Virus record (IMG/VR): IMGVR_UViG_3300042261_002385
Span: 372,266-436,265 of that record
DNA: 64,000 nt
Direction: 5' to 3' (one strand)
Part shown: one piece after another, positions 1,406 through 63,688 of the stretch
How the letters are laid out: each line of letters begins with the position of its first letter
Numbering within the stretch: position 1 is the first letter of the stretch
The notes under the pieces: model-generated
The model's database searches: none
Seen by the model: only the letters and a program-made list of their open reading frames with translations
Told to the model about the DNA's origin: nothing
Program-made: the position numbers and the translations under genes

Positions 1406-1435
1406 AAAAACCACTCAATATTGAGTGGTTTTTTT
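1406..1435. terminator. Bidirectional intrinsic terminator
   Basis: aaaaaccactcaat-attgagtggttttt inverted repeat between convergent genes. Confidence 0.85.
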
Positions 1436-2129
1436 AATTTAATACTTCTTCTAATTTTATTTCTCTAATTACAGATTTATAAATATCAGGACTAGTTGAA
1501 TTTAATATTTCTAAAACTTTTTTTCTATTAAAAAAACCTTTATAATATGTTTTTTTATTTTCAATGAAATCACCATACTCAGCAGTTAAGTTTATGAAAA
1601 GATTAGGTTTGATTCTTAGTATACATTTATAAAGTATACCACCAGTCTCATCATCATAAACACTTAATGTAAATGATTGCTCAAATTCAGAACCAACGTT
1701 AGAAAGCCCTGGTTTAAATCCTAATTTTTGAAACCAATCAATAACCAATTTATGTTTTGACCATCGACAAGTCATTTTAGTTTCAGTATCATAGTATGGA
1801 AATCTACTCGGCATTAATTCAAATTCCGACTCATCTGAAATATAATAATCATCTAATAGAATTTCATCTATATCAATATCTCTAGTTTCTTCTTTTGAGG
1901 TTGATAACTTTCGTTTAAATGTATTTGTTAAGTGTTTATCAAAAATGAATCTAGTCCTTCCATCTTGTGATAATCTTTCACACTCATCAATCAAAGATTT
2001 TGAAACTTCTGACTTAACAGATTCAACACTAAGTTCTTCAATAAAACCATCTGGTTTCTCATCTTCACTTATGACTGAGATTGTTCCATCTGGATTTTGC
2101 ATCACTTTCATACTTGTTATATTAAACAT
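1434..2129 (-). CDS. Hypothetical protein with C-terminal tag (REIKLEEVLN)
   Basis: 231-aa ORF; tag at C-terminus. Confidence 0.75.
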   Translation of the reverse strand: MFNITSMKVMQNPDGTISVISEDEKPDGFIEELSVESVKSEVSKSLIDECERLSQDGRTRFIFDKHLTNTFKRKLSTSKEETRDIDIDEILLDDYYISDESEFELMPSRFPYYDTETKMTCRWSKHKLVIDWFQKLGFKPGLSNVGSEFEQSFTLSVYDDETGGILYKCILRIKPNLFINLTAEYGDFIENKKTYYKGFFNRKKVLEILNSTSPDIYKSVIREIKLEEVLN

Positions 2130-2144
2130 TTAATATATAGTTTC

Positions 2145-2729
2145 ATGAAACATTTATCAACATTTAAACTATTTGAGAGATTAGATAATTCTACATTAGT
2201 TACAATAGACCAGTTACTTGAAAGAATTAGAATTCCAAATCATATGAGACCACAAATTATTAACTGGTGGAATCAAAATAGAAGTGAAATTAGAATTCAT
2301 TTTTTTAGATTTAATACTACAGAACCAATTGGTGGAATAATTATGGATGAAAATACTATAGTTTTGAACGATGACTTACAAACAAGACCAATGCCTCCTC
2401 ATATTAAATTATTTTTGGCACTTCACGAAAGTAGACACTGCGACCAACACAGAATGGGAAATTCAATAACACAATATTTTGATTCTGTCGTAAGAAACGA
2501 TAGACAATCATTTATGAGACATTATCAAGAATTAGAAAGTGATGCTAATGACTTTGCTATTTCATCTATGAGAGCTTGTGGTTTCGACAGACAAATGAAT
2601 TTTGAAGAAAGAATGCTTAGATCAAATGAAATGGCAGGAGATATGGTTTATCAAATGATGTCAGATGACATACAGAGATTGAATCCGGTTGATTTATTTG
2701 ACTTATTTAAAAAACAAATTGGAGTGTGA
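2145..2729 (+). CDS. HExxH metallopeptidase-like protein with N-terminal tag
   Basis: Start moved to ATG 2145 (MKHLSTFKLFE) behind taatatata; LHESRHCDQH plus downstream ELESDA. Confidence 0.6.
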   Translation: MKHLSTFKLFERLDNSTLVTIDQLLERIRIPNHMRPQIINWWNQNRSEIRIHFFRFNTTEPIGGIIMDENTIVLNDDLQTRPMPPHIKLFLALHESRHCDQHRMGNSITQYFDSVVRNDRQSFMRHYQELESDANDFAISSMRACGFDRQMNFEERMLRSNEMAGDMVYQMMSDDIQRLNPVDLFDLFKKQIGV

Positions 2730-3064
2730 AACATTTAAGAAAAATTTTTGAGTCAGCAGCAGAAGAAAATGAAATCAGAGAAGTTTGTATCTGGCTTCAA
2801 GACTTAGTTGATGATATTGAGATTACAGATAATGTTAGATGTTATGATATTAATATTCGTTGTTTTAGGAAGACTAATACATCTATTGGTGAGTTAGTTA
2901 AAAATTCAGAAAGACTTCAGGAAATAACAAAAGAATATGCTGACCTTTTATTAAGATTGGAGGATTTAGGATATAAAGTTTCTTATCATTTATTAGAAAA
3001 CAAACATCACCTTAACTTTTTTAGTATGACAGGTAAAATACAGATTAATAAAAAAGACCAATAA
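2726..3064 (+). CDS. Hypothetical N-tagged protein (paralogue family)
   Basis: GTG start, MKHLRKIFES. Confidence 0.7.
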   Translation: MKHLRKIFESAAEENEIREVCIWLQDLVDDIEITDNVRCYDINIRCFRKTNTSIGELVKNSERLQEITKEYADLLLRLEDLGYKVSYHLLENKHHLNFFSMTGKIQINKKDQ

Positions 3065-3069
3065 ATTCA

Positions 3070-4089: not shown

Positions 4090-4395
4090 ATGATAAAGTT
4101 ATTTTCATACGGAACACTTATCGAAAAAGAAGTTCAACTTCGTGAATTTGGTCAAGAATTCAAAGTGGAATCAAATTTAGATGGTGTAAAAGATTTTACA
4201 ATTGATAAAATAGAAATTGAAGGAGAATACTATTATTGTGCCATCAGTAGACCAGAATCAATAATTCTGGGTCAAATTGTCCATATACCTGAAGAATTTA
4301 TGACTTTAGTCGATGATTATGAAGGTGAAGATTATAAAAGAGTAAGTGTCAAAACACTCTCTGATGTTGAATGTTTAATGTATGTAAAAAGATGA
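4090..4395 (+). CDS. Gamma-glutamylcyclotransferase (AIG2-like) family protein
   Basis: LFSYGTL motif and DDYEGEDYKRV C-terminus. Confidence 0.8.
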   Translation: MIKLFSYGTLIEKEVQLREFGQEFKVESNLDGVKDFTIDKIEIEGEYYYCAISRPESIILGQIVHIPEEFMTLVDDYEGEDYKRVSVKTLSDVECLMYVKR

Positions 4396-4745
4396 GCACC
4401 TTCGGAAAGAAATACTTAAATTATTGGCCTTATCGTTTTGATGAAATGATAACCGGTGATAGTTGTTTAAGATGGAATAAAACCGATAAAGATTTTCAAT
4501 TAGAAATACTTAAAAAATGGTATCCTATTGGAATGCGTGGAAAAGCCATTTTAGCTGGTAAAACGACAGGAGGTAACTTGTATGAGATTACCGGATATAT
4601 TGAGCATGTGTGGGGATGGAAATTAGATATTGATTATGTTGATAGTAATTTTAGAAAAGATGTGCATCCTATCAGATTTATTCCAGAAGAAGAAGATAGA
4701 CTTAGAATTTTAAGAGAGATTAGATTGGAAAAGTTATTAGACTAA
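4371..4745 (+). CDS. Hypothetical protein with C-terminal tag (REIRLEKLLD)
   Basis: ORF; tag. Confidence 0.7.
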   Translation: MFNVCKKMSTFGKKYLNYWPYRFDEMITGDSCLRWNKTDKDFQLEILKKWYPIGMRGKAILAGKTTGGNLYEITGYIEHVWGWKLDIDYVDSNFRKDVHPIRFIPEEEDRLRILREIRLEKLLD

Positions 4746-5099: not shown

Positions 5100-5104
5100 A
5101 TTTT

Positions 5105-5347: not shown

Positions 5348-5479
5348 TTAATTAAATATTCTTTCTATTTTTTCTTTTCTAAATGACTTTCTCAAAAGAA
5401 ATCTTTTACTTAAGTTATAAACTAAAGTTGATTGATAATACACATCAACACCACCTGAAATCACATTAATCTCTTTCAT
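5348..5479 (-). CDS. 43-aa ORF with C-terminal tag (RKEKIERIFN), absent from ORF track
   Basis: Manual translation MKEINVISGG...FRKEKIERIFN*. Confidence 0.6.
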   Translation of the reverse strand: MKEINVISGGVDVYYQSTLVYNLSKRFLLRKSFRKEKIERIFN

Positions 5480-5596
5480 AAATTCTTTTAATCTTGTTTT
5501 TTCTTATAAACCTTCTAAAGTATCTGCTAGCAGCACCTCTTTTAGGATTTAACTTCTGATACATTTTTTCTACAGCCTTTTCTACCCAACTTTCAC

Positions 5597-6202
5597 TCAT
5601 TTCTCACACACCTTTCTAAAATCAGATAATATACTATTTCTTAATTCTCTAAACTCTAAGTCTAATTCATTCCAAGTCCAATCTTTAGACACTAATTTAT
5701 CCCAGATATAGTTAGCCATCTCAAAGTCATAAATGGATCCAGTAGTTGCAACCTGAGTTGCAAAAATTGGAATTCTAAGTGAATGAAAAATAGATTTTAT
5801 TCCAGTGTGATAGTCTCCTATTTCTAATTTCTTTTTGCACTTCACCCAGCTATTTGAACTTACATGAGAAGTCGCGTGTCTAAGTTTAGGAAAATCTATA
5901 TCTAAATTGTATGGGATATTTTCTTGAATCTTAGCCCAGGTTGGGGCAAAAATACACTCTAAGTTATTTATTCTATGCCACTCTAAATCTTCCTTAAACT
6001 TATCTGGAGTATAGATATGAATGTTATACTTCTCTAATTTCAACTCAATTGCTTCTACTGAATTGTTTGCTACCATTATGATATCCCAATCAGAATTTCC
6101 TGTATGAGTATTGTAAATTCTACTTCCGAAGATATAGATGTTATGCACCCGCTTTGGATGAAGTCCTGAATGAAGTATTATATCTTGTGCAGTTGGTATC
6201 AT
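5597..6202 (-). CDS. Nucleotidyltransferase (DNA pol beta superfamily)
   Basis: IYIFGSRIY...NSDWDII (hGS...DxD). Confidence 0.8.
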   Translation of the reverse strand: MIPTAQDIILHSGLHPKRVHNIYIFGSRIYNTHTGNSDWDIIMVANNSVEAIELKLEKYNIHIYTPDKFKEDLEWHRINNLECIFAPTWAKIQENIPYNLDIDFPKLRHATSHVSSNSWVKCKKKLEIGDYHTGIKSIFHSLRIPIFATQVATTGSIYDFEMANYIWDKLVSKDWTWNELDLEFRELRNSILSDFRKVCEK

Positions 6203-6209
6203 AATTTAT

Positions 6210-6217
6210 CAAATATA
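6210..6217 (-). promoter_or_regulatory. Bacteroidota -7 promoter element TATATTTG
   Basis: caaatata on + strand, just upstream of the 6202 operon. Confidence 0.6.
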
Positions 6218-6260
6218 ATAATTTAATTTAATATATACTACAATAAAAAAAGATAAGATT

Positions 6261-6712: not shown

Positions 6713-6739
6713 ATATAATAAGAAAAAAAGATTAGTATC

Positions 6740-8871: not shown

Positions 8872-9123
8872 TTATAATAACTGACTTAATTTTAACTCTC
8901 TAATTATAGGAGTTAGTAAAATTCTTTGGTCATCCGGGAGTCCAATTAAACAACTTTGTAGTAAAACCGTAAAGTGTGAAACCTGGACTTCATCTTCATA
9001 GATATAAGCATTTGATAATTCTCTTTCAATTTCTCTTAAGTTTGAGGCAAGTTCATACATCTGCTTGTCAATTGCAGTATGTTTAATGTCTTTAATAGCT
9101 GATATAACTAAACCTGCTTTCAT
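8872..9123 (-). CDS. Hypothetical protein with C-terminal tag (RELKLSQLL)
   Basis: ORF; tag. Confidence 0.7.
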   Translation of the reverse strand: MKAGLVISAIKDIKHTAIDKQMYELASNLREIERELSNAYIYEDEVQVSHFTVLLQSCLIGLPDDQRILLTPIIRELKLSQLL

Positions 9124-9155: not shown

Positions 9156-10133
9156 ATGGCAAATGATCCAAAAACAATTATAGAAGAATGGGGAGTTGAT
9201 CCACTTGAAGGAGTTCAATTAAATGAAGTTCAACAAACAATAGTTGATGAGGCATTAGGAAATGCCACTTCATTCAGAAATGATAAAGTGGTAAGTGATG
9301 AACTTGAAAATAAATATTCTAGTTTATTCAGTCAATGTGATAGTGTAATTAAATCATTGGATGAAACATCTCTTAAAAGACTTCTTAGAAATGTTTATAT
9401 AAATGAAAATCCAAAGTGGCACCCTGAGAGAAACTCACTTGTTCATATTAAAATCGTTATGTCACGAGGAATTCAAACTGGAGATGATGACCTTATTCAA
9501 GCAGCACTTTATCACGACATTTCTAAATTTGATACTGTTTCATTTAACAAACAGGGATGGCCAACATCACTTGGGCATGACAAAGCAGGAGCTGATGTTG
9601 CTATGTCAGATGGTGCAAATGAAGTAGTTGTTTATGTTTGTGCTAAACATATGGTCATTAAGGGTTGGCAGGGAGCTTCAGAAGGTGGTGAATTAAATCC
9701 ATCAACTAAGTTTAAGATATTTGCAGATGCTCCAGGAGCAGACAATAATGAAAAAGCAAAATCATTTTGGAAACTTTGTGTGTTTTCTAAAATGGATAAT
9801 ATGGGAAATGATTTCAACTATGAAAACTTAAGATGGGATAATCCAAACTATGATAATTGGGATGAAGAGTGTCCTTTAAGAGATCAATTTAAGAAAGCAG
9901 AACTAGTTGAGATTAAAGTGGAAAAACCAAAACCTCCTTTCTCTGCTCAAGAGATTATGGCATTTGGAGTTCAACCAGGTCCAATGATGGGTAAAGTTAT
10001 TGGAGCTACTACTGGAAAAACTAGAGAAGAGGCTTTAGAAATTATTAAACAAATGACTGGTAATCCGAATTTGACTATGGAATCTAAAAGATGGATTAGG
10101 ACATTTGAGAGTTTTAGAAATAAATTAAGATAG
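9156..10133 (+). CDS. HD-domain phosphohydrolase with CCA-adding-enzyme-like C-terminal segment
   Basis: WHPE..SLVH, AALYHDISK, GH; GVQPGPMMGKVI; ends KRWIRTFESFR. Confidence 0.7.
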   Translation: MANDPKTIIEEWGVDPLEGVQLNEVQQTIVDEALGNATSFRNDKVVSDELENKYSSLFSQCDSVIKSLDETSLKRLLRNVYINENPKWHPERNSLVHIKIVMSRGIQTGDDDLIQAALYHDISKFDTVSFNKQGWPTSLGHDKAGADVAMSDGANEVVVYVCAKHMVIKGWQGASEGGELNPSTKFKIFADAPGADNNEKAKSFWKLCVFSKMDNMGNDFNYENLRWDNPNYDNWDEECPLRDQFKKAELVEIKVEKPKPPFSAQEIMAFGVQPGPMMGKVIGATTGKTREEALEIIKQMTGNPNLTMESKRWIRTFESFRNKLR

Positions 10134-10442
10134 TATTTCTTCTAATTTTAACTCTCTAATTTTTTGTAAGTCTAATTTCAATGTTTCAATTGATGAATAC
10201 TTAAAATGTTTTCCACCGTCATAAGACCAACAATCTAAAGTTGATACAACTCTATTCCAGTCAAGTGGTTTAACTAAAACCACCTGTTGATTTTGATTAT
10301 AAATAAGCTGAAAAGCATAAACACCTTCTTTTATATAATTAAGTATTTCAGATGTTTTTTCATCGGAAAATCGTAAATTATACTTTACTTTATGGTAATT
10401 TAACTCAGCTTTTATATAAACTTCAATCATAATCCTAAACAC
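10125..10442 (-). CDS. Hypothetical protein with C-terminal tag (RELKLEEILS)
   Basis: ORF; tag. Confidence 0.7.
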   Translation of the reverse strand: MFRIMIEVYIKAELNYHKVKYNLRFSDEKTSEILNYIKEGVYAFQLIYNQNQQVVLVKPLDWNRVVSTLDCWSYDGGKHFKYSSIETLKLDLQKIRELKLEEILS

Positions 10443-10648
10443 TTTAATTTATTATCTCTCGCTTTTGATTTAGTGGTAAATAATTCCTTTCTATAATTAC
10501 CAGTGATATCTAAATCATTAACAATTGTATAATGTCCTGTAACAATTCTTAGATAAACATATTTCTTCCCTTTAGTTAGGACTTTAACTTTTTGACCATT
10601 ATAAACATTTTGATATCGGTCTTTAATAGCAATTACATAATCCTTCAT
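10427..10648 (-). CDS. Hypothetical protein with C-terminal tag (RDNKLKCLGL)
   Basis: ORF; tag. Confidence 0.7.
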   Translation of the reverse strand: MKDYVIAIKDRYQNVYNGQKVKVLTKGKKYVYLRIVTGHYTIVNDLDITGNYRKELFTTKSKARDNKLKCLGL

Positions 10649-10681: not shown

Positions 10682-10927
10682 CTACAGAAATATCTCATCT
10701 AACATTTTTTGCCTCCAAACATCTAAAGTAACAAAGTTCTTTGTTGGAAACCAATCCATCTTACTAAATCCTTCTAAGTTTAAGTAATTTTTATCCCATT
10801 CTACAGCATCGAAAAAAACAAGACTTGCTTCATATACTTTACCATATTCTAATGGCTCTTCTAATTTTAGAATTGGATCTCCACTTAACTTATTTGTAAA
10901 GTTAGCATCTATACAAACTACTTTCAT
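10682..10927 (-). CDS. Hypothetical protein with C-terminal tag (RQKMLDEIFL)
   Basis: ORF; tag. Confidence 0.7.
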   Translation of the reverse strand: MKVVCIDANFTNKLSGDPILKLEEPLEYGKVYEASLVFFDAVEWDKNYLNLEGFSKMDWFPTKNFVTLDVWRQKMLDEIFL

Positions 10928-11445
10928 ATTCCTAAATCATCTAATTTACTATCTCTTAAAAACTCTTTGATAAGTAAGTTCAATTCATATTTTCCATCAA
11001 CACAATCTCTTTCTAGAATCTTAATTGGTCTAATTTCTATTGTGTGAGTTCTATCAATTCTTTTATCAGAACCCCAATCGGATAACTGTGAATTTTTATT
11101 TTTGGATAGAATATCAAAAGTCATAAGTCTAATTGACCTCATCTTTTTTGATGTAACTATTTTTGTTTTAAAGTAATCCGATTTCTCAAAAGTAATCTCA
11201 ACTATGAAGTGAAACTTATCAGTGACTTCTGATAAGTTTGATGGCATAGTTTTATAAAACTGAGGCTGTTCAATATGAGAATAAGTAATGACTCCGCCAC
11301 TTTCTGAAACTGCGACATCATCAATTGTGAAAAAATCATCACTGGTCATTTCGAAAAAATTCTTTTGCTCAGGAAGCCAACTTAAAAAGATTAGACTTTT
11401 AGTTTCCTTATTAAATGAGTTTGATATATTGTAGTCAATTTTCAT
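10924..11445 (-). CDS. Hypothetical protein with C-terminal tag (RDSKLDDLGI)
   Basis: ORF; tag. Confidence 0.72.
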   Translation of the reverse strand: MKIDYNISNSFNKETKSLIFLSWLPEQKNFFEMTSDDFFTIDDVAVSESGGVITYSHIEQPQFYKTMPSNLSEVTDKFHFIVEITFEKSDYFKTKIVTSKKMRSIRLMTFDILSKNKNSQLSDWGSDKRIDRTHTIEIRPIKILERDCVDGKYELNLLIKEFLRDSKLDDLGI

Positions 11446-11563
11446 TAAATATCCTTTTAATTTTTTGCACTCTAACTGTTTTTTTGAATCTAAAGTATTT
11501 CAATGGAACACCAGAACCCTGTAACAACCTTTCATAGAAATATTTTAACTCAGACCTATTCAC
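11435..11563 (-). CDS. 42-aa ORF with C-terminal tag variant (RVQKIKRIFNEN), absent from ORF track
   Basis: Manual translation from GTG; fills the gap in the operon. Confidence 0.5.
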   Translation of the reverse strand: MNRSELKYFYERLLQGSGVPLKYFRFKKTVRVQKIKRIFNEN

Positions 11564-13544: not shown

Positions 13545-14270
13545 ATGAAAAGTGAAACAGAATTTAAGAAATTTGCACTAAGTGAGGGTTTATCATCAAT
13601 GGACCTACACTATCACCAACAACAAATTGAGGCTTCTATGACACCTTATATTCTTGAAGAAAGAGAAATGAGGGTCACACAAATGGATGTATTCAGTAGA
13701 TTACTAAGAGATAGAATTATTTGGATATCAGGAGTTGTAGATCAAAGAATGTGTGATGTCACTCAAGCACAGCTTATGTTTTTAGATTCAACAGAAAAGA
13801 AAGATATCACACTTCATATAAATTCACCAGGTGGTTCCGTTTTACATGGTTTAGGAATTATTGATGTTATGAACTATATCAACTCAGATATCCAAACAAT
13901 CAATACAGGAATGGCAGCATCTATGGGTTCTGTTCTACTTTCATCTGGAACAAAAGGAAAACGATCATCACTTCTACATTCAAGAGTTATGACACACCAA
14001 GTCAGTCACGGAATGCAAGGAAATATTCAAGATACAACTATTTCTCACATTGAAGGACACAAATACAACTATATCTTATTTAAGATTTTGGCTGACAACT
14101 GTGGAAAATCTTTTGAAGAAATGATTGAGTCTTCTCGTCGTGACAAATGGTTTAACTCACATGAAGCACTCCAGTTTGGATTGATTGATGAGGTTATCGG
14201 TGATAACTCTATGGATAAAATGTTAGTTGGATTTGATGACTATTATAACAGAGAAGTTTTATCAAAATAA
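13545..14270 (+). CDS. clpP: ATP-dependent Clp protease proteolytic subunit (Bacteroidota-type)
   Basis: PYILEER..DVFSRLL.DRII, INSPGGSV, GMAASMG (Ser), MTHQ (His), RDKW (Asp). Confidence 0.95.
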   Translation: MKSETEFKKFALSEGLSSMDLHYHQQQIEASMTPYILEEREMRVTQMDVFSRLLRDRIIWISGVVDQRMCDVTQAQLMFLDSTEKKDITLHINSPGGSVLHGLGIIDVMNYINSDIQTINTGMAASMGSVLLSSGTKGKRSSLLHSRVMTHQVSHGMQGNIQDTTISHIEGHKYNYILFKILADNCGKSFEEMIESSRRDKWFNSHEALQFGLIDEVIGDNSMDKMLVGFDDYYNREVLSK

Positions 14271-14666: not shown

Positions 14667-16472
14667 ATGTCAAATTGGACTTTAATTAAAAGAATCTGGG
14701 AATTCGCTTACCCTTTTAGAAAAACTATTGGAGTAATTTTCTTATGTATTCTTTTTACAGCCATCATTGATGGAATCAATACTTATTTTTTAAGTAATAT
14801 TTTTGATATCATTCAGAAACACTCAAACGATCCAAATTATATGAATGCAGCTCTTCTATCAGCTGCATTGGCTGGAATAGGAGTATTTGTAAGAATTCTT
14901 ATTTCAAGATATCAAGGTAATCTTGAAATAAGAAAACTTGATATAACTGCCTCAAACCATTTAAATCATTTTTCAATTGCAAAATATTTTGGATTTTCTA
15001 ATGGTCAACACATCAATGAACACTCCGGAGTTAAACAAAATATAATTACATCTGGTTTTCAATCAGTTCAAGGTCAAATTCAGCTTTTTGTTTATCACTT
15101 ACTTCCAGCAGTTGCTAACTTTATAGTTTCAATTGTGATGTTGTTTTATATTAGCTCCTACATAGGATTCGCTTACTTAGGTGTGTCTTTTATTTTTCTT
15201 TGGTCGATATATAAGTTCAATACTTATCTTCAACCAAAATTGAGAGAAGTAAGAGACGCTAGAAATCAAACAGCTAGAACAATTTCTGAATTGTATCGAT
15301 TTGTATTTTTAATTAAAAATGAAGTAGCTGAAAAGAAATCCTTAAATGATTTGGATGATGTTCAAGATGCGCATCAACAGGCCTATGAAAAGACTTGGCT
15401 ACCTGGAAATAATTGGTTGACCATCATTCGATTATCAACTGCTGGATTTAGATACTTAACCATACTTTTTGCAGTTTGGTTGTTATTTAATGGTTTTATA
15501 ACTGCAGGTGCTATCTTCTTAATCTTTACCTGGTCTCAAAACTTCATAACGTCTCTTTGGATGATAACTGATATGCAAAAACAATTTATAACAGATAAAA
15601 TTAACATTGAAAAGTATTTTGAAATTTTAGAAATCAAGCCTGACGTTCAAGAAGTTGAGACTCCAATAAGTTCAGATTTAATAGGAGATATTGAGTTTAG
15701 AAATGTCGAGTTCAGTTATCCACAAAGAAAAAAATCACATAGTGATAAATTAGAAGATGAACTTCAATCAGAAATGGTTTTGAAAGGACTAACATTTACA
15801 ATTAAAGAAGGTGAAAAAGTTGCCTTTGTCGGTGAAAGTGGTTCGGGTAAATCTACAATTGCGAATCTTGTAAGAAGAGCATTCGATCCACAAAATGGTG
15901 AAATTTTAGTAAATGGTAATAATCTTAAAGAATTAGAACTAAAATCATTTCTTAGAAAAATTGGAAGCGTAGACCAAGAGGTAAATCTCTTTGATAAGAG
16001 TATTCGAGAAAACATTTCTTATGGAACAGAAAGACTACTAACCGATGAGGAGTTAAATAACATATCAAAGATGGCTCGTATTGATTCATTTTACAAAAAA
16101 CTAGAACATGGTTGGGACACTATTGTTGGTGAACGTGGAGCTAAAGTATCAGGCGGTGAAAAACAAAGAATTGGTATCGCAAGAGCATTGGCTAAGAATC
16201 CAGAAATACTTATCTTTGATGAGGCGACTTCTGCACTTGACACTGTAAGTGAAAGAGTGGTTCAAAAATCAATCGATGCTGTTAGTAAAGGAAAAACTTC
16301 TATAATCATCGCACACCGTCTTTCAACTGTAAAAAACTGCGACAAGATATTTGTATTAAAACAGGGAGTATTATTAGCTGAAGGAACACATGAGCAACTT
16401 TTAGAAAGTTGCGAATATTATAAAGAATTAGTAAAACATCAATTAACAAATAAACCAACAGAAAATGTATAA
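14667..16472 (+). CDS. ABC exporter, fused TMD + ATPase
   Basis: TM helices; GESGSGKS, VSGGEKQR, ILIFDEATS, IAHRL. Confidence 0.93.
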   Translation: MSNWTLIKRIWEFAYPFRKTIGVIFLCILFTAIIDGINTYFLSNIFDIIQKHSNDPNYMNAALLSAALAGIGVFVRILISRYQGNLEIRKLDITASNHLNHFSIAKYFGFSNGQHINEHSGVKQNIITSGFQSVQGQIQLFVYHLLPAVANFIVSIVMLFYISSYIGFAYLGVSFIFLWSIYKFNTYLQPKLREVRDARNQTARTISELYRFVFLIKNEVAEKKSLNDLDDVQDAHQQAYEKTWLPGNNWLTIIRLSTAGFRYLTILFAVWLLFNGFITAGAIFLIFTWSQNFITSLWMITDMQKQFITDKINIEKYFEILEIKPDVQEVETPISSDLIGDIEFRNVEFSYPQRKKSHSDKLEDELQSEMVLKGLTFTIKEGEKVAFVGESGSGKSTIANLVRRAFDPQNGEILVNGNNLKELELKSFLRKIGSVDQEVNLFDKSIRENISYGTERLLTDEELNNISKMARIDSFYKKLEHGWDTIVGERGAKVSGGEKQRIGIARALAKNPEILIFDEATSALDTVSERVVQKSIDAVSKGKTSIIIAHRLSTVKNCDKIFVLKQGVLLAEGTHEQLLESCEYYKELVKHQLTNKPTENV

Positions 16473-16893
16473 AGCTTATATTGTAATGAAAAAAGGTTAT
16501 GAATATGATGATAATATTTATAACGAAACAGAAGGTGGAACTCCTAAAACAGTTTGTTTCACAAAAGATGATGCGATTAAAAAGGCAAAAGAGCTGAATA
16601 TAAAAGAATATCAAACAAGTTCCATAACAGAATTTTCTTATGAGTATGAAGACTGTATAAATGTTGAATGGGATATATTTGAGAAATTCAATCAGTCTTT
16701 AGTTGAAAAGTATGGTAAAATTCAATCAAAATATACCTGGGACAATACAGAAAATAGACTTCATCCTGAAGCTAATCAGGATGAAATAAACGAATATTGT
16801 AAAATGGTTACAGTTTCATTTTATGATGTAGTTGAGGTAGATGTTGATATGTCAAGTTGGAGGGATAATCAACTAAATCAAATTATAGACTAA
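16465..16893 (+). CDS. Hypothetical protein with C-terminal tag (RDNQLNQIID)
   Basis: ORF; tag. Confidence 0.72.
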   Translation: MYKAYIVMKKGYEYDDNIYNETEGGTPKTVCFTKDDAIKKAKELNIKEYQTSSITEFSYEYEDCINVEWDIFEKFNQSLVEKYGKIQSKYTWDNTENRLHPEANQDEINEYCKMVTVSFYDVVEVDVDMSSWRDNQLNQIID

Positions 16894-20346: not shown

Positions 20347-20562
20347 ATGATAAATAAAAAAAACATACAGGAATACTTTGAACTGATGAAATCAAAAAAT
20401 GTCATTGCTGACTATTGGAACTTTGATAATTTTCTGGAAGAATCGGAACATGTCAAAATCTACTATTCACATAAGTCTGGAAAACGATCTTCATTTAGAT
20501 TTACTAAAGAAATGGTAATTCAAGAACTTAGAGATAACAAGTTAAAAAAAATTTTTGATTAG
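20347..20562 (+). CDS. Hypothetical protein with C-terminal tag (RDNKLKKIFD)
   Basis: ORF; tag. Confidence 0.7.
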   Translation: MINKKNIQEYFELMKSKNVIADYWNFDNFLEESEHVKIYYSHKSGKRSSFRFTKEMVIQELRDNKLKKIFD

Positions 20563-44642: not shown

Positions 44643-44906
44643 ATGATAGTATTCAATACAATAAAGAAAGCAGAACACTGGTTAAAGTGGTATTCTAAAC
44701 ATAACGATTATCATAGAGATGGTTATGATTGGGAATCTGTTTCAACTTATATTGATGGAAATCTTGTTGTAACTCGTCACCAAGGTGATGGTTGTGGGTG
44801 TGGATGTGACGACCATCATTTTGATTTCATCACAGTTCATGGTAGAATTAAAAAATTCGATACTAAATCTATTCGTGGTGAAAAGATAAATGACTTAGGT
44901 GTATGA
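44643..44906 (+). CDS. Hypothetical protein with C-terminal tag (RGEKINDLGV)
   Basis: ORF; CGCGC motif; tag. Confidence 0.7.
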   Translation: MIVFNTIKKAEHWLKWYSKHNDYHRDGYDWESVSTYIDGNLVVTRHQGDGCGCGCDDHHFDFITVHGRIKKFDTKSIRGEKINDLGV

Positions 44907-45106
44907 TAGTTAAATGTAAATCAGATAATGACTCTGTTGGTAAACTTAAAGGCTTGACTATTGATAAATCATATACAGTTACTGGTATTGATAAAATAGG
45001 GTATAGAATAGTTGATAATGAATTTAGAAACTATTGGTATACAAAAGAATTGTTTTATCCGATAGATGAAGAAAGAAATAAAAAATTAAATGCCTTAGGA
45101 ATATGA
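44903..45106 (+). CDS. Hypothetical protein with C-terminal tag (RNKKLNALGI)
   Basis: ORF; similar architecture to 24558 and 10427. Confidence 0.7.
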   Translation: MIVKCKSDNDSVGKLKGLTIDKSYTVTGIDKIGYRIVDNEFRNYWYTKELFYPIDEERNKKLNALGI

Positions 45107-45450
45107 AAACCCCAGATGAAATTAGATTAGAAGAAACTAAAAAGTGTAAAGGATACACTAATAGACAATTACGTTTTAATCTTATAATTTATAACTTCTT
45201 TAAATTTCTTTTTTCAAGAACATTTATGTTTATTTTCTATGCTACACTAATCGTAATAATGTCAATGTTTATGATGGTTCCAATCGAAATTAGAATCTTC
45301 TTTGGTCTTATATCACACTTTATTCTTTTTATGGTATTTGATCCACTGATAAGTAAGTTTGTTGGTGTAGACTATACCAAAAAAGAAATCAATATCTTAA
45401 TACAGGTCAATAAAGAGATTCTAAAACAAAGACTAAATGAAAGAAGTTGA
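45103..45450 (+). CDS. Membrane protein
   Basis: Two hydrophobic segments. Confidence 0.65.
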   Translation: MKTPDEIRLEETKKCKGYTNRQLRFNLIIYNFFKFLFSRTFMFIFYATLIVIMSMFMMVPIEIRIFFGLISHFILFMVFDPLISKFVGVDYTKKEINILIQVNKEILKQRLNERS

Positions 45451-45916
45451 AATCCTTTTAGACATCATAAATAAACTTCCAGGAGTCGAAGTTACTGGTC
45501 ATATCTTAGACAGATCTTTTGACCAAATTAAATCAAAATGGTCAGGGCCCCTTATCTTTTTACATATAGATGAAAGTGAACAAGAAGGTTTATTCTTCTT
45601 AACCAGAGTATTAGATAAGAGATATTTTCAACACGGACATCTTTGGAGAATCGAACTATCAGTTGGAGACCTTAATTATAACAATGGTGATAGACCAATC
45701 ACCTATCAGATATTTAGACCACTAGTAGGAATCGAAACTGAAGAAACATTAGTCAGGGAATATAGTGACTTGATTGAAAACATGGTTTATCATTTCAATC
45801 ACAGTGAGTTTATGGACTGTTATAGAATGTGTAGAGAAAAATATAGTAATAGTAGACTTCATTGGACTAACGAGGCTTGGTTAAGAAAAGATAAATTAAA
45901 CAGATTAGGAATATAA
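45437..45916 (+). CDS. Hypothetical protein with C-terminal tag (RKDKLNRLGI)
   Basis: ORF; tag. Confidence 0.72.
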   Translation: MKEVEILLDIINKLPGVEVTGHILDRSFDQIKSKWSGPLIFLHIDESEQEGLFFLTRVLDKRYFQHGHLWRIELSVGDLNYNNGDRPITYQIFRPLVGIETEETLVREYSDLIENMVYHFNHSEFMDCYRMCREKYSNSRLHWTNEAWLRKDKLNRLGI

Positions 45917-45940: not shown

Positions 45941-46288
45941 ATGAATAATTTTTTAGATGATACCGATATTTTTATAAAGGATAACTTAGACTGGATATTA
46001 GCTGGTAACTATGATGATAAGTTTAATAAAGAACAGTTAGATAAGATGATTGAACTAAGTTTTCTTTATAATCATATGATATTAGAAAACGATAAACTTA
46101 CTTTTGAGTATAGTAAGTATCAAATAAATCTAACTAATCTTTATGAACAATATAGTGAGTTGGTTTATCAATTAGGTAGAGAAGGAGTAAAGAATATGAT
46201 TATCACTACAATCACTTCACAGGACCAATTTAAGTTAGCTTTTAAATCATTCTTAAGAGATAGAAAGATTAATAAAATTATCGAATAA
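45941..46288 (+). CDS. Hypothetical protein with C-terminal tag (RDRKINKIIE)
   Basis: ORF; tag. Confidence 0.72.
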   Translation: MNNFLDDTDIFIKDNLDWILAGNYDDKFNKEQLDKMIELSFLYNHMILENDKLTFEYSKYQINLTNLYEQYSELVYQLGREGVKNMIITTITSQDQFKLAFKSFLRDRKINKIIE

Positions 46289-46294
46289 TCGAAT

Positions 46295-46436
46295 ATGAGA
46301 AGAAGACATCCAGAAATTAAAGGGTATAAAAGGGTATATTCTTATTTTAGATTATTCCGGTAATCGAAGACCACTCGGAACATTTGAACCGTAAGACGTG
46401 ATAAGAGATAAGAAGTTAAAGAAACTTGGAATATAA
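46295..46436 (+). pseudogene. Broken gene, or 12-aa tag-only ORF (GTG 46398, MIRDKKLKKLGI)
   Basis: Perfect tag preceded by an in-frame TAA and an upstream frameshift. Confidence 0.45.
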
Positions 46437-46458: not shown

Positions 46459-46776
46459 ATGAAATGTTATAAGCTAGTCGATAACACACCAGTTAAATGT
46501 GAATTAGATGAGATAGATATGAAGGATAAAACTCTTTGGTATGATGATTTCTCAGGAGTTCAAGTTTCTACTGTATTCTTAGTTTGGGACCATTCATTCG
46601 GAAATGGAGCACAACCAGTTCTTTTTGAAACAATGGTGTTTGGTGGCGTCTATAATGACTATCAAATCAGATATAATACTTATGAAGAAGCCGAAGCAGG
46701 TCATAAAGAAACGTGTTATATGGTTAATAAAATATCTGATGATAGACAAAAAAAATTAGATGATTTAGGTATCTAA
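46459..46776 (+). CDS. Hypothetical protein with C-terminal tag (RQKKLDDLGI)
   Basis: VSTVFL..DH......LFETMVFGG motif; tag. Confidence 0.72.
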   Translation: MKCYKLVDNTPVKCELDEIDMKDKTLWYDDFSGVQVSTVFLVWDHSFGNGAQPVLFETMVFGGVYNDYQIRYNTYEEAEAGHKETCYMVNKISDDRQKKLDDLGI

Positions 46777-47736: not shown

Positions 47737-47973
47737 ATGAAAGTATTCTTTGAATTAGAAGTAGGGTTATTTGACCGTGCTTCAATAAGAACGCAATTAA
47801 ATAACTCTAAAGCAAAACTCGAATATTGGTATCCCCAGTGTCGTGTTCTTCTTACAGAAGATAAGAATTGGTTTGAATCAAAGTTTTATTTTGAAGCTGA
47901 TGGTTTACCAGATACGGCTAAACTACATATGCAACATTGGCTAGGTAAACTAAAGAGTTTAGCAAAATTATGA
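47737..47973 (+). CDS. Hypothetical protein
   Basis: ORF in operon behind TTTG-N20-TATATTTG (47539-47570). Confidence 0.65.
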   Translation: MKVFFELEVGLFDRASIRTQLNNSKAKLEYWYPQCRVLLTEDKNWFESKFYFEADGLPDTAKLHMQHWLGKLKSLAKL

Positions 47974-48338
47974 TAGAAAAACTATGGAATGATATTAGAC
48001 TTATCTATGACGGTTATAATTTTAAGAGTAATTCATTAGTAGATGATCTAATGATTGTCTCACAAGATAACTATTACATAGTAAATTTCAGCCGTTCGGA
48101 TAGCCTGTCTAAAAAAAGAATCACTACTCAAATAAGAATCGAAAAGAACTATAATTTAGTTAATATGTGGTCTATAGGTAAACAATTCGATGATAGATAC
48201 CACAATAAAACAGATTATAAACTCACGGTTCAAACAAATAATAAAATAGAAGTAGATGAAAACCACAAAATTGAATTAGCATATAAAATAATCACACCAT
48301 TCCTAAGAGAAGTTAAACTTGCTAAGATTATAAACTAA
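47970..48338 (+). CDS. Hypothetical protein with C-terminal tag (REVKLAKIIN)
   Basis: ORF; tag. Confidence 0.7.
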   Translation: MIEKLWNDIRLIYDGYNFKSNSLVDDLMIVSQDNYYIVNFSRSDSLSKKRITTQIRIEKNYNLVNMWSIGKQFDDRYHNKTDYKLTVQTNNKIEVDENHKIELAYKIITPFLREVKLAKIIN

Positions 48339-48342: not shown

Positions 48343-48627
48343 ATGGATTTAGAACAAATGATACAAAGATGTCCTGACATCACTAAACTTACTCAATCTT
48401 TGCTTAATGAAGTGGCTATAAAAAAAACCGGTCAAGAACTGAATTTCAATCTAACATTCATTGAGAACGGATATGATGATTTAGATGTAATTGAATTAGT
48501 AATGGAAATCGAAAAGATATTAGATATCACTATACCCGATGATGTGGTAGATGTAATTATAAAAGGAAAACCACCACGTTTCACCGAGTGGATTCGAAAT
48601 GAAAAGATTAGACAACTTGGCTTATGA
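48343..48627 (+). CDS. Acyl-carrier-protein-like protein lacking the phosphopantetheine Ser, with C-terminal tag
   Basis: GYDDLDVIELVMEIEKILDITIPDD vs ACP consensus G.DSLD.VELVM.LEE.F.I.IPD; RNEKIRQLGL. Confidence 0.7.
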   Translation: MDLEQMIQRCPDITKLTQSLLNEVAIKKTGQELNFNLTFIENGYDDLDVIELVMEIEKILDITIPDDVVDVIIKGKPPRFTEWIRNEKIRQLGL

Positions 48628-49552: not shown

Positions 49553-49885
49553 TATAAAATGACTACGAAAGTTGTTTATAACTCTGATTTTTAATATACA
49601 AAAATATGCACACTTTTCTGTAGTCTTTCTTAAAGACTCAAACTTTGTTTGTAGTATTATATAGCCTAATAGCCTTCTCCATTCGCAAAACTCTACGCTT
49701 AATAAACCACCTGGCACGCTTATTACGATACATCTGACTGAGGTTCTCTATAAAGGTTATCTTATAGTCCATAAATACGTTTTATCTTCATCATACGAGC
49801 CGTCTTAATGAGTTTAGATTTGATACGAGCCTTCCATGATTTTGCAAGTGAAAATGATGTTACTACATTATCACTGGCGACTTTG

Positions 49886-50077
49886 TTACTCTCCCAATCC
49901 ATCTTTGACATCCATAAACTTCTTTATGACAAGTTCTAAAAGCTTCGAACGGTCGTAACCATTCGACTCACAGTAAGATTCAAACCGGTCAAATACTTTG
50001 GCATCAATTGTGCCACATAAACGTTTCTTAGCGGCGTTTTCTCTTTTCGCCATTTCAAATTCATCTTCTTCTTTCAT
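49886..50077 (-). CDS. Ribbon-helix-helix (CopG/Arc-like) DNA-binding protein
   Basis: KRLCGTID..VFDRFESYC...G..RS.LLE..I..F pattern. Confidence 0.6.
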   Translation of the reverse strand: MKEEDEFEMAKRENAAKKRLCGTIDAKVFDRFESYCESNGYDRSKLLELVIKKFMDVKDGLGE

Positions 50078-50375: not shown

Positions 50376-50600
50376 TTATTCCCCTATAATTTGATTAATC
50401 TTACCTTGTCTTATTTGAGACCTTATACTATAGAAGCTATCTAAATTAATTGACCAACTATTATTAATAAACACAGTTTCGCCTACTATCTGGTATACAC
50501 TATCTTGTTTTTGGAGTTCGCCTAAAATCCAATCTTGTGAAACTTCCATTTCGCCAATAGGAGACATTATAACTAATTTATCAACTTTATTATCTAACAT
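50376..50600 (-). CDS. Hypothetical protein with C-terminal tag (RQGKINQIIGE)
   Basis: ORF; tag. Confidence 0.7.
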   Translation of the reverse strand: MLDNKVDKLVIMSPIGEMEVSQDWILGELQKQDSVYQIVGETVFINNSWSINLDSFYSIRSQIRQGKINQIIGE

Positions 50601-50614: not shown

Positions 50615-50827
50615 ATGAATTGGATTTGTCGTTTATTTAGGCATAAGTTTCGTTATCAAGAAAAAAGAGTTCCTTTACAGATTGGGTCTATTACTAAAAA
50701 GTTTAGAAAGTGTCAGAGATGTGGTCTTACTCAGAAGTATTTAAATGATACTGGCCAGTGGATTGAATTAAGAAAGACATTATCTGAGATACGGGATGAA
50801 AAGCTATCTAAATTAGGAATCAAATAA
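50615..50827 (+). CDS. Small Cys/His protein with C-terminal tag (RDEKLSKLGIK)
   Basis: CRLFRH...CQRCG; tag. Confidence 0.7.
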   Translation: MNWICRLFRHKFRYQEKRVPLQIGSITKKFRKCQRCGLTQKYLNDTGQWIELRKTLSEIRDEKLSKLGIK

Positions 50828-58170: not shown

Positions 58171-58389
58171 TTAATTAAGTAGTTTATTTAATAGTTGTTC
58201 TCTATGAGATCTAAGATTTCTCCTATAAGAGTCTAAAATTATTACTTCAATTTCTTTTTCTGTGATGAGAAAACCATGATGCATATCTTGTATTATTTCA
58301 GGTGACAGGTCAAGTTTTACTCCTTTGTAATATGCTTGAGTAAGACCATCTGGTTCTTTAATCCATTTTATCTCGTCTTTCTCTATCAT
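58171..58389 (-). CDS. Hypothetical protein with C-terminal tag (REQLLNKLLN)
   Basis: ORF; tag. Confidence 0.65.
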   Translation of the reverse strand: MIEKDEIKWIKEPDGLTQAYYKGVKLDLSPEIIQDMHHGFLITEKEIEVIILDSYRRNLRSHREQLLNKLLN

Positions 58390-62302: not shown

Positions 62303-62377
62303 AAACTATATATTAAAATATTTTGTTTATTTTTTGATTTAGATAAAAACTTTAGTATCTTTGTCTATAACATAAAT

Positions 62378-63004
62378 ATGAAAACATCTTTTAAACTCTT
62401 TAACTTTTTAGGAGCACCAGTTGAAATTAGTGTCTGGTTTTTCTTAATTTTTCTTTTTTTGAATGTCAAAATAGTCTTAGCTCTTTTTATTTCTATATTA
62501 GTTCACGAAATGGCTCATGCGCTAGTTGCTCATAGACTCGGCTGGGGATTCTATGGAATAAAACTAGACCTGTTTTTCGGAACTGCAAACGTAGATATGT
62601 CTATGCCTGAAAGAGATTCAATACGTGTCGTTGCTGCTGGCCCGCTAAGTAATTTGCTACTTGCTGGTGTGACTTTGTTAGGATATTCACTCGCTGTAAA
62701 TTCAAACTTAGGTGTGAATCCACAAGTAGGTTCATTTCTGAATAGTCTTTTTACTATAAATATGATTTTATTTATTTTCAACTTACTTCCTATTTTTCCG
62801 ATGGATGGTGGTAGATTGGTTAGAGATATTTTACTTACTAGACTACGAAGTAGACTAAAAGCTCGTAGAATATCAGCAACAATATCATTGATAGCGTCAG
62901 CACTTCTTTTACTATATTCTGTTTCAATAAGTGCTATTTTCTTAATATTCTTTTCGGCTTTCTTTATATGGATTGCTTATAAGGATCTTCAAGAACTTAA
63001 ATAA
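62378..63004 (+). CDS. Site-2 protease (peptidase M50)
   Basis: HEMAH, AAGPLSN, NLLPIFPMDGG; start after TTTG-N19-TATCTTTG at 62333-62363. Confidence 0.9.
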   Translation: MKTSFKLFNFLGAPVEISVWFFLIFLFLNVKIVLALFISILVHEMAHALVAHRLGWGFYGIKLDLFFGTANVDMSMPERDSIRVVAAGPLSNLLLAGVTLLGYSLAVNSNLGVNPQVGSFLNSLFTINMILFIFNLLPIFPMDGGRLVRDILLTRLRSRLKARRISATISLIASALLLLYSVSISAIFLIFFSAFFIWIAYKDLQELK

Positions 63005-63270
63005 TCAAATAAATATATAGTTTATGATACTAAAAGACTGGCAAGTAATTGCTGAATCTGATGAATGTGTATTAGTTACTATTGATGAATCTGTCGATAT
63101 CAATGGTTTGGAACTAACATTAATTAGTGATACTAGAACTCCAATTTTAAAGTTAAAGGTAACTTGTAGAGAGATACACATTTGTTCACATACTGAGAAG
63201 CCAATGTTTGCTCAATTAGGAAACTCTGTCAAATACGTAAAGGGTTCTGGAAAATCTATGTATACAGAAA

Positions 63271-63459
63271 ATGTGTGATTGGAAACGACTTCGTGTTGAT
63301 GAATTAATAGAAGGAGTTGATTTCTATTGGGAAGAAAAAGAAGGTATTAGACTTAGAGTTTTTACTGAATCTTATTTACAGATGATTAGACCAAAGTGTT
63401 GTGAATCAGGTTGTCGACACTGTCCGTGGAATTTTAAAAAAGAGAATAATGTCAAATAA
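63271..63459 (+). CDS. Small Cys-rich protein (DUF5522-like)
   Basis: VFTE.YL..R..CC.SGCRHCPW. Confidence 0.7.
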   Translation: MCDWKRLRVDELIEGVDFYWEEKEGIRLRVFTESYLQMIRPKCCESGCRHCPWNFKKENNVK

Positions 63460-63688
63460 ATTTTACTGCCCTGGTTGTGGTTATGTTTGTGCTTTAGTTA
63501 CAGATTTAAATGATATATACGTTGCTAAAATTAACAAAAGAATATGGGTTGATTTTACGAATTATCAATGTGATAAATGTTTTGATTCATTTACTACTAC
63601 AGAATTAGATGAATTGAATTTGTTTGAAATTAATAAAGCAATTCGACGGTCTGAAAGAAAAACTAAAATAAAAACGTTATTAAAGTAA
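63401..63688 (+). CDS. Zn-ribbon protein with C-terminal tag (RKTKIKTLLK)
   Basis: CPGCG...CDKC; true start probably 63449. Confidence 0.6.
   Translation: MNQVVDTVRGILKKRIMSNKFYCPGCGYVCALVTDLNDIYVAKINKRIWVDFTNYQCDKCFDSFTTTELDELNLFEINKAIRRSERKTKIKTLLK

Follow-up and report, generated by a model that had tools for sequence, protein, structure and literature searches.

Short terminal peptides shared by otherwise unrelated proteins are known from several systems, and the closest of them provide the framework in which we describe here a C-terminal tag of phage proteins. In phage T4, a short N-terminal capsid-targeting sequence, removed by the prohead protease at an L/I-x-E site, serves as a common address for a handful of late, fast-evolving and otherwise unrelated small internal proteins. 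The tag studied here is C-terminal, has Glu at position -4 in only 36% of cases, sits on about 20-55% of the genes in arrays and is mostly found in early-type operons. The ssrA tag and the C-terminal ClpX-binding peptide of the adaptor SspB are strictly C-terminal peptides with aliphatic ends that dock proteins onto a Clp unfoldase; they are unstructured and show no sequence similarity to our tag, which is a predicted capped helix with invariant Arg and Lys, and we identified no unfoldase or adaptor, although a ClpP is encoded in the DNA studied. The scaffolding protein of phage P22 ends in a coat-binding helix, Y-R-K-L-K-A-K-L-K-G-I-R, with Arg and Lys three residues apart and a G-I end in the same register as our tag; Y292, R293 and K296 are its coat contacts and deletion of its last 11 residues abolishes binding (PMC9965877). 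However, its hydrophobic positions differ, the profile similarity is not significant, and the P22 helix occurs in one late protein per phage, not on many early ones. Poxvirus ankyrin/PRANC (F-box-like) families and the cohesin-dockerin system are large families of variable proteins sharing a small C-terminal docking element for one central machine, but those elements are domains of 30-70 residues with known receptors (Skp1, cohesin), against 10-11 residues and no identified receptor here. The peroxisomal PTS1 (SKL-COOH), read by the TPR domain of PEX5, is a strictly C-terminal label on many unrelated proteins that needs the free end, but it is a tripeptide of eukaryotes; we found no TPR or PDZ receptor, and the one weak TPR-like protein in our DNA is private to this phage. 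Finally, the membrane-targeting sequence of MinD and FtsA is a C-terminal helix of similar length, from which our tag differs by a conserved acidic residue, a low net charge and a low hydrophobic moment.

The DNA analysed (hereafter the window) is a stretch of 64,000 nucleotides, positions 372,266 to 436,265 of the IMG/VR record IMGVR_UViG_3300042261_002385, and is part of a 436 kb phage contig. An earlier note, made from the sequence alone, had claimed that about 31 unrelated small proteins of the window share a C-terminal R-[DE]-x-K-[LI]-x-x-[LI]-(G-I) tag. We re-read each of these ORFs and find that the observation holds, and is in fact stronger than was claimed. The strict pattern R..K[LI]..[LI] is present in the last 12 residues of 21 of 137 called genes, against a mean of 0.12 (maximum 2) in 2,000 residue shuffles, a comparison that had been set beforehand as a possible refutation; the same pattern occurs only twice in 17,776 internal positions. 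The loose pattern is present in 27 genes (0.33 expected) and in 0 of 121 non-gene ORFs. The Arg is exactly 10 residues from the end in 15 of the 21 strict cases, and independent JGI gene calls predict the same small ORFs.

Of the 31 ORFs listed in the earlier note, 26 have clear terminal tags, two of them weak. On the left side of the window these carriers are 1434..2129 (-), 231 aa, ending VIREIKLEEVLN, a variant that ends in two aliphatic residues plus a polar one; 4371..4745 (+), 124 aa, ending ILREIRLEKLLD; the mini-protein 5348..5479 (-), 43 aa, ending FRKEKIERIFN, a basic K-I-x-R-I-F variant; and 8872..9123 (-), 83 aa, ending IIRELKLSQLL. A cluster follows with 10125..10442 (-), 105 aa, ending KIRELKLEEILS, the last gene of an array headed by TAnnTTTG; 10427..10648 (-), 73 aa, ending ARDNKLKCLGL and related to the SH3-like carriers 44903 and 24558; 10682..10927 (-), 81 aa, with an SH3-like body and a degenerate tag VWRQKMLDEIFL; 10924..11445 (-), 173 aa, with the consensus tag FLRDSKLDDLGI and a stop that overlaps the next start (ATGA); and the mini-protein 11435..11563 (-), 42 aa, ending VRVQKIKRIFNEN. 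Further carriers are 16465..16893 (+), 142 aa, ending SWRDNQLNQIID, directly downstream of an ABC exporter gene; 20347..20562 (+), 71 aa, ending ELRDNKLKKIFD; 24558..24755 (+), 65 aa, with an SH3-like body and ending LIRQQKIEDLGI; 25807..26130 (+), 107 aa, ending LERDIKIDELGI, with an ATGA overlap with 26127..26351 (+), 74 aa, which ends DLRDQRLSMIGIK and is related to 50615; and 34663..35007 (+), 114 aa, ending EIRDFKLDLVL.

In the right part of the window we find 44643..44906 (+), 87 aa, ending SIRGEKINDLGV; 44903..45106 (+), 67 aa, with an SH3-like body and ending EERNKKLNALGI; 45437..45916 (+), 159 aa, ending WLRKDKLNRLGI; 45941..46288 (+), 115 aa, ending FLRDRKINKIIE; 46459..46776 (+), 105 aa, ending DDRQKKLDDLGI; 47970..48338 (+), 122 aa, ending FLREVKLAKIIN; 48343..48627 (+), 94 aa, an ACP-like fold without the carrier serine, in which the tag helix follows a K-G-K-P-P linker and ends WIRNEKIRQLGL; 50376..50600 (-), 74 aa, ending QIRQGKINQIIGE; and 50615..50827 (+), 70 aa, ending EIRDEKLSKLGIK. 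The two weak carriers are 58171..58389 (-), 72 aa, ending SHREQLLNKLLN, and 63401..63688 (+), 95 aa, ending SERKTKIKTLLK and followed by a terminator hairpin. Two mini-protein carriers had been missed, 5466..5600 (-), 44 aa, ending IRKNKIKRIYERD, and 49762..49911 (-), 49 aa, ending ARMMKIKRIYGL. Conversely, five of the ORFs listed in the earlier note are only partly right or wrong: 46398 is only a 12-codon ORF (VIRDKKLKKLGI followed by a stop) lying out of frame behind a 22-aa ORF, the two together (46295..46436, +) being probably a broken tagged gene; 11891, 57902 and 58358 carry the motif 9-11 residues before the end, so that it is not terminal; and 4737 does not fit.

The statements that the bodies are mostly unrelated and that the codons differ are both correct. 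BLASTP finds only three small families among the carriers of the window, and synonymous codon use at R, D, E, K and L is close to background, while Leu switches between TTA and CTN codons and Arg between AGA and CGN codons. Conservation follows codon triplets and the x positions are free, which speaks against a DNA repeat or a mobile regulatory cassette (of the T4 PeSL type), although some synonymous bias remains at the last codons (GGA, ATA and CTA) and the tag is strongly associated with ATGA stop/start overlaps, two points that suggest something beyond a pure protein signal. The tag is equally well kept where no downstream gene is near.

The earlier note took the tag for a feature of one genome, but it is widespread in uncultured phages, at the end of thousands of otherwise unrelated small proteins. 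It sits on at least 344 proteins, falling into 226 unrelated BLAST clusters, from about 75 other viral contigs; in the loci picked up by a DNA pattern scan of viral contigs, 419 of 1,907 genes carry it, and in one 17 kb array 33 of 60 genes (55%) do so. One of the more than 200 carrier families alone has about 5,000 clusters at 50% identity in public metagenomes. In contrast, 596 Gb of cellular genomes gave 85 single hits, matching our own estimate of about 80 chance hits from uniform base frequencies, and only 2 of these lie at gene ends. A cultured Tenacibaculum jumbo phage and a 50 kb sample of the Lak megaphage Lak-A1 have none. The motif is confined to the C-terminus, with 148 terminal copies against 1 near-terminal copy in 3,421 proteins (560,000 residues), and the Arg is 10 residues from the end in 239 of 344 carriers, 30% of tags being displaced by 1-3 residues. 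No description of the tag was found: no Pfam or PHROG family covers it (among 150 carriers only 3 have Pfam hits and 6 have PHROG hits), a profile search of the PDB gives only a chance hit, and literature searches find nothing.

The consensus of this modular unit of 10-11 residues is [LIWFY]-R-[DE]-x-K-[LI]-x-x-[LI]-G-I-COOH, with two interchangeable variants, one ending in two aliphatic residues plus a polar one and the other ending K-I-K-[KR]-I-[FY]. AlphaFold predicts it as a short terminal helix appended to different folds: it follows an SH3-like barrel directly after the last strand with a pLDDT of about 93, whereas in the ACP-like carrier it follows the Pro-Pro linker and is more loosely attached, with a pLDDT of about 70. 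We read the L-x-x-L-G-I end as a Schellman-type helix cap. The carriers are mostly small, soluble ORFans. Only 16 of 344 have a transmembrane segment, and seven of the N-terminally anchored ones, read by eye, carry their positive charges after the anchor, which places the C-terminus in the cytoplasm. They lie mostly in arrays headed by host-type (Bacteroidota) promoters. In the window, carriers make up 13 of 41 genes in units headed by TAnnTTTG, against 4 of 40 in units headed by TAATATATAA, and across all tag loci the figures are 27% against 13% (odds ratio 2.6, p = 3e-5).

The interpretation offered in the earlier note is partly supported. It inferred a protein-level C-terminal label without described function, which we confirm, acting as a degron (a ClpP being encoded at 13545), as a MinD-like membrane helix or as a docking peptide for one hub; among these our data disfavour the membrane helix, leave the degron possible and fit best with the docking peptide, although no hub was identified. 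We tentatively suggest, with slightly less than even confidence, that the terminal helix would present Arg(-10), Lys(-7), Leu(-6), Leu(-3) and the terminal Ile with its free carboxylate to one shared receptor, so that many different early accessory proteins would be plugged into the same machine, in AT-rich phages of which many are huge and probably infect Bacteroidota. What the analysis itself establishes is that the tag exists and is strongly enriched, that it is strictly terminal, modular on different folds, selected at the protein level, restricted to phages and predicted to be a helix, and that its carriers associate with host-type promoters; that there is a single receptor, and what this receptor is, are inferences.

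Our first guess for the receptor, only weakly supported, is a Clp-type AAA+ protease system, i.e. the phage ClpP plus a host or phage unfoldase or adaptor, in which case the tag would act as a tether or degron, clearing early proteins, or delivering whatever they have bound, as infection proceeds. The ClpP of the window (13545..14270, +) is genuine (Pfam CLP_protease, E = 4e-54), and relatives at 59-71% identity are found in at least 80 viral contigs, out of 162 matching stretches, and at least 5 of those contigs also carry tags. The location at the extreme C-terminus with a free end is that of such degrons. However, the link is circumstantial: the ClpP gene has no conserved neighbour, many ClpP loci have no tag nearby, and the Lak-A1 sample without tags comes from a phage that has ClpP. 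Moreover, known AAA+ degrons are unstructured, whereas this tag is predicted to be a confident helix abutting the folded domain, and enzyme-like carriers (ACP-like, MazG-like and two nuclease folds) are not obvious candidates for rapid turnover.

Other hypotheses seem to us less likely. The resemblance to P22 scaffolding, and the fact that T4 internal proteins are likewise many unrelated, fast-evolving small proteins sharing one terminal label, could suggest that the helix binds the inner face of the coat or scaffold, so that tagged proteins are packaged and injected with the DNA, as a C-terminal counterpart of the T4 signal, the P22 scaffolding tail or encapsulin cargo peptides. We consider this unlikely, since carriers are enriched in units with host-type (early) promoters and depleted in units sharing the motif of the lysis and structural-like genes, and since up to 55% of the genes in an array, as well as enzyme-like carriers, are implausible as cargo. 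The R-x-x-K register is indeed that of P22 gp8, but the tag profile does not retrieve P22 scaffold chains at E <= 10, its PSSM score is only in the top 1.2% of random C-termini, and a weak phiKZ-internal-protein-like gene of the window (56929) has no tag. About as unlikely, in our view, is the absence of any shared partner, the helix being then a generic stabilising cap, spread because new small genes in these arrays arise by duplication or recombination at the 3' junction and kept because the last codons also carry the start and initiation region of the next gene. Indeed, 54% of genes with an ATGA stop/start overlap are carriers, against 14-18% in other contexts, Ile is ATA in 101 of 103 tags that end in TGA, GGA, ATA and CTA are over-used even without an overlap, large tandem paralogue arrays exist, and in a fused multi-repeat protein the junction keeps only the first half of the tag. 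Yet Arg, Lys, Gly and the aliphatic positions are kept, with background codon use, across the 226 unrelated clusters and across 24-47% GC, the tag is equally good at operon ends followed by terminators, and a mere cap would not need an invariant Arg and Lys.

The remaining hypotheses are very unlikely. Membrane targeting would be suggested by a C-terminal helix with basic and aliphatic residues and a terminal Gly-containing end, as in MinD, but position -9 is acidic in 87% of tags and position -4 in 53%, the mean net charge is +1.0, the hydrophobic moment is 0.21, against 0.27-0.64 for MinD and FtsA peptides and 0.32 for random C-termini, and the invariant Arg, Lys and Gly point to a specific protein partner. 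A nascent-peptide signal acting inside the ribosome at termination, for instance to favour re-initiation at the overlapping start, could account for the fixed distance to the stop codon, the enrichment at ATGA overlaps and the independence from the protein body, but it fits badly with the displaced tags, with equal conservation at convergent gene ends and before terminators, and with a helix that AlphaFold places with confidence on a domain. Least likely of all is an export signal for the phage ABC transporter (14667-16472). Type I secretion signals are C-terminal and uncleaved, a carrier lies directly downstream of this gene and a relative has the same arrangement, but close relatives of the exporter occur in only 2 other viral contigs, while the tag is in more than 75, no membrane-fusion or outer-membrane partner was seen, and the anchored carriers that we checked point their tag into the cytoplasm.

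Going further, it remains possible, though somewhat less likely than not, that the tag and a dedicated receptor form a phage-specific, proteome-scale sorting or turnover pathway, a bacterial-virus counterpart of signal peptides, PTS1 or F-box systems, by which tens of thousands of protein families in uncultured, often huge, phages would route early accessory proteins to one machine or place in the infected cell. If one receptor reads the tag, a large share of the "dark matter" genes of huge phages becomes experimentally approachable at once, since the tag marks a functional class of early accessory proteins, gives a handle for pull-downs and points to a central host or phage machine on which infection depends; it would also be a compact, 11-residue, phage-orthogonal tag for targeting or controlling proteins in Bacteroidota. 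The tag appears to have gone unnoticed, and its scale makes it matter even without a mechanism.

The largest carrier family has the SH3-like body, and tandem-repeat versions of the same body carry no tag. When compared with the Pfam models DUF6501 and DUF7244 (SH3 clan), which do not cover the tag, single-domain carriers score around or below the cut-off, over body residues 1-50 only, while a tagless multi-repeat protein of 704 aa passes.

The window (30.5% G+C) belongs to IMG/VR contig IMGVR_UViG_3300042261_002385 (436,265 bp), which derives from a 522 kb JGI metagenome scaffold (JGI 3300042261, Ga0451520_0000008). It encodes an endolysin, a sigma factor, tail-fibre-like lectin-fold proteins, a GIY-YIG endonuclease, a genuine ClpP, an ABC exporter and a protein with a type IX secretion CHU_C domain; the latter domain, together with the frequent TAnnTTTG boxes, points to a Bacteroidota host. 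Nucleotide and protein searches against deposited phages gave no close relative, the nearest being 630-640 kb uncultured phages with only weak, ClpP-level matches, whereas the ABC-transporter hits in that collection were bacterial-looking fragments and uninformative. Rfam and tRNA scans were empty. The phage also encodes a type IX secretion substrate with SprB/PKD repeats plus the CHU_C domain (53545-55995 (-)), a TerC membrane protein (26368-27021 (+)), an M50 peptidase (62276-63004 (+)) and a DOT1-like methyltransferase (22066-22716 (-)).

The observation of the earlier note, that many unrelated small proteins of the window share a C-terminal motif, is confirmed. A simple greedy gene call gives 137 genes, and the strict pattern R..K[LI]..[LI] lies in the last 12 residues of 21 of them, whereas shuffling each protein gives 0.12 on average (maximum 2 in 2,000 trials) and the same pattern occurs only twice at 17,776 internal positions. 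A looser pattern marks 27 genes and none of 121 non-gene ORFs. Of the 31 ORFs that the note had listed, 26 are clear carriers, three have the motif 9-11 residues before the end, one does not fit, and one is a 12-codon remnant of what is probably a broken gene; conversely, two carriers had been missed. The remnant lies at 46295-46436 (+), where a 22-aa ORF ending ..YSYFRLFR is followed, out of frame, by the 12-codon ORF VIRDKKLKKLGI*, which looks like a frameshifted or decaying small tagged gene, or an assembly error. BLASTP links only a few carriers to each other, and the independent JGI gene calls predict the same small ORFs.

The note's interpretation is only partly supported. Its proposal that the signal acts at the protein level rather than as a DNA repeat holds, since the conserved residues use varied codons (AGA/CGN, AAA/AAG, TTA/CTN/ATH and GGN) and, in 239 aligned tags from many phages, synonymous usage at Arg, Asp, Glu, Lys and Leu is close to background while the three "x" positions vary freely. 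The exception is the last two codons and the stop: ATA is used in 87% (background 44%), GGA in 64% (36%) and TGA in 57% (19%). Much of this reflects the 4-base ATGA stop/start overlap with the next gene, found in 36% of carriers against 8% of other genes. However, in the tags of the viral loci L002-L121 (our numbering of the stretches retrieved), GGA, ATA and CTA are over-used at tag positions -2, -1 and -6 even when no downstream gene overlaps, and neither protein-level selection nor the ATGA overlap explains this excess. Tags are as well conserved at convergent gene ends and before long gaps as at overlaps, and the downstream start therefore cannot be why the amino acids are kept.

The tag is widespread in viral contigs. 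A degenerate DNA pattern for R-[DE]-x-K-[LIM]-x-x-L-G-I-stop hit at least 120 stretches, many of them clustered (for example 7 in 15 kb and 4 in 1 kb), in contigs of 4.5-483 kb, the stretches having 24-47% G+C. In those loci 419 of 1,907 genes carry the tag, and the 344 distinct carriers fall into 226 BLAST clusters. The same pattern in 596 Gb of cellular genomes gave 85 scattered single hits, which matches our own estimate of about 80 chance hits from uniform base frequencies, and only two of them lie at gene ends. The only cellular-genome hit with clustered tags (6 of 19 genes, 22% G+C; locus L195) is contig JALOAD010000013.1 of the MAG "Candidatus Muiribacterium halophilum", which is probably a phage contig binned into the MAG. 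Published 634 and 642 kb phage genomes carry the tag on 10 of 83 and 6 of 54 genes in the sampled regions, whereas Tenacibaculum phage PTm1 (0 of 143 genes) and a 50 kb piece of Lak-A1 (0 of 103 ORFs) do not. One abundant phage has 33 tagged genes among 60 in a 17 kb single-strand array without a single Pfam hit. A profile of one carrier family (SH3-like) finds 4,998 clusters at 50% identity among 1.84 billion representatives, and 122 of its top 127 single-domain members are tagged.

The consensus is [LI]-R-[DE]-x-K-[LI]-[KN]-[ED]-[LI]-G-I-COOH, with the Arg 10 residues from the end in 239 of 344 carriers; in these 239 aligned tags Lys reaches 87%, the acidic position 87% and Gly 73%. Two variants replace the G-I end, one with two aliphatic residues plus a polar one, the other ending K-I-K-[KR]-I-[FY], and since orthologues switch between variants these are equivalent. 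The latter, very basic, variant ends a family of 42-60-aa mini-proteins found in the window at 5348-5479, 5466-5600, 11435-11563 and 49762-49911 (all -) and in loci L058, L095 and L110. The strict motif is terminal 148 times and near-terminal once in 3,421 proteins. AlphaFold predicts the tag as a helix: on an SH3-like barrel it is residues 59-70 of 72, with pLDDT about 93, while in an ACP-like protein it is a separate helix after a K-G-K-P-P linker, with pLDDT about 70. We read L-x-x-L-G-I as a Schellman-type helix cap, which is a structural inference. Tandem-repeat proteins built from the same SH3-like body have no tag between repeats or at their end, and the helix is therefore not part of that fold.

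Carriers are short, with a median of 96 aa, and almost all are ORFans: Pfam hits 3 of 150 and PHROGs 6 of 150, these being ACP-like, MazG-like, Mrr-type and UPF0102 nuclease folds. The ACP-like carriers (window 48343-48627 (+), locus L008 at 1529-1816, and P0092) have D-D-L-D where acyl carrier proteins have D-S-L-D; they therefore lack the phosphopantetheine serine and are probably not true carrier proteins. Only 16 of 344 carriers have a hydrophobic segment, and seven with an N-terminal anchor, read by eye, place their positive charges after the anchor, from which we infer that their C-terminus is cytoplasmic.

Two upstream motifs were seen in the window. The Bacteroidota -7 box TAnnTTTG heads the small-gene arrays, whereas TAATATATAA precedes the endolysin and large structural-like genes. 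A TAATATATAA-like motif recurs about 20-30 nt before start codons of lysis and structural-like genes, namely upstream of 177, 1062, 6261-8305 (six genes), 12589(-), 16946, 28438(-), 29580(-), 41991(-), 43249, 51347 and 56929(-), and is probably the promoter read by the phage sigma factor (42312-43172). Carriers make up 13 of 41 genes in the first class and 4 of 40 in the second, and across all tag loci the figures are 27% against 13% (odds ratio 2.6, p = 3e-5). TAnnTTTG is enriched about two-fold in the sense orientation upstream of genes in tag loci. We read this as mainly early expression by the host polymerase, although this is an inference from promoter motifs only. The two long G+C-richer intergenic stretches at 44468-44642 and 46777-46943 are not unusually structured and look like terminators.

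We think that these features together (a strictly terminal position, a predicted and apparently capped helix, conserved Arg, Lys and Gly with three aliphatic positions, modularity on unrelated folds, a cytoplasmic location, restriction to phages, and presence on a fifth or more of the accessory genes) are what one expects of a docking or address peptide read by one receptor. The enrichment, the strictly terminal position, the protein-level conservation, the modularity on different folds, the restriction to phages and the association with host-type promoters are established by the analysis, as is the helix at the level of prediction; that a single receptor exists, what it is, that the tag docks or promotes turnover, and that carriers are expressed early are inferred. 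No receptor was found. The ClpP is genuine, and relatives at 59-71% identity occur in many huge-phage contigs, including at least five that carry tags, but no neighbour is conserved around ClpP in 80 loci, many ClpP loci lack nearby tags, and Lak phages have ClpP but no tag in the sample examined. A Clp-type tether or degron is therefore no more than our first guess, held with low confidence. The TPR-like 549-aa protein is private to this phage, and among the families seen most often near tags, those scanned are ordinary phage genes (phosphoesterase, portal, methylase, NUDIX, terminase and RecA-like). We also considered multi-repeat SH3-like proteins as a multivalent receptor, but dropped the idea for lack of evidence, since none occurs in the loci examined and the one inspected looks like a fusion of array paralogues.

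This apparent fusion, a 704-aa protein in which only the first half of the tag survives as a linker, lies in locus L303 (ENA scaffold MUNK22-1_SAMEA7428300_METAG-scaffold_178), next to about 30 tandem SH3-like paralogues of 62-79 aa at 4300-7900 and 16150-19470, in a contig that has a T4_Y16D Pfam hit; the 15 paralogues that we read (4494-7715) end in variants of ..SEIRNE[KT]I[DN]KLLE.

As an alternative to a docking peptide, capsid targeting is suggested by the tail of the P22 scaffolding protein, Y-R-K-L-K-A-K-L-K-G-I-R, whose Y292, R293 and K296 contact the coat, but the similarity is not significant and the promoter data argue for early expression. A MinD-like membrane helix, one of the functions envisaged in the earlier note, is disfavoured by the conserved acidic residue, the +1 net charge and the low hydrophobic moment of the tag. 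In the window, ClpP, a 122-aa ORF, the ABC exporter and a tagged protein lie in one same-strand run (13545-16893 (+)), and a tagged gene also directly follows the exporter in a related phage (locus L290, 4001-6187); export by this transporter is nevertheless disfavoured because its close relatives are rare, the exporter occurring in 3 contigs only. The possibilities that the tag is a by-product of junction architecture, or acts as a nascent peptide, are not excluded, but both leave the conserved Arg and Lys at operon ends unexplained.

The concept of a terminal address tag is familiar, whereas a proteome-scale C-terminal tag in phages is not. No Pfam or PHROG family covers it, DUF6501 and DUF7244 matching only the SH3-like body, for which single-domain carriers score around or below the cut-off, and full-text literature searches for the motif and for related concepts found nothing. 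A search of the PDB with a profile of the tag gave only a chance hit to the R-SNARE zero-layer segment ERDQKLSEL (E about 0.1), and fold searches with the SH3-like model gave only generic SH3/Tudor hits and uncharacterised phage proteins. Finally, a family of 415-585-aa proteins lies near tag arrays (L071 at 5615-7369 (-), L092 at 256-1587 (-) and relatives in 10 loci), some members of which end in acidic, aromatic-tipped tails (..GDGDDLPF, ..DDDDDEW) like those of single-strand DNA-binding proteins.
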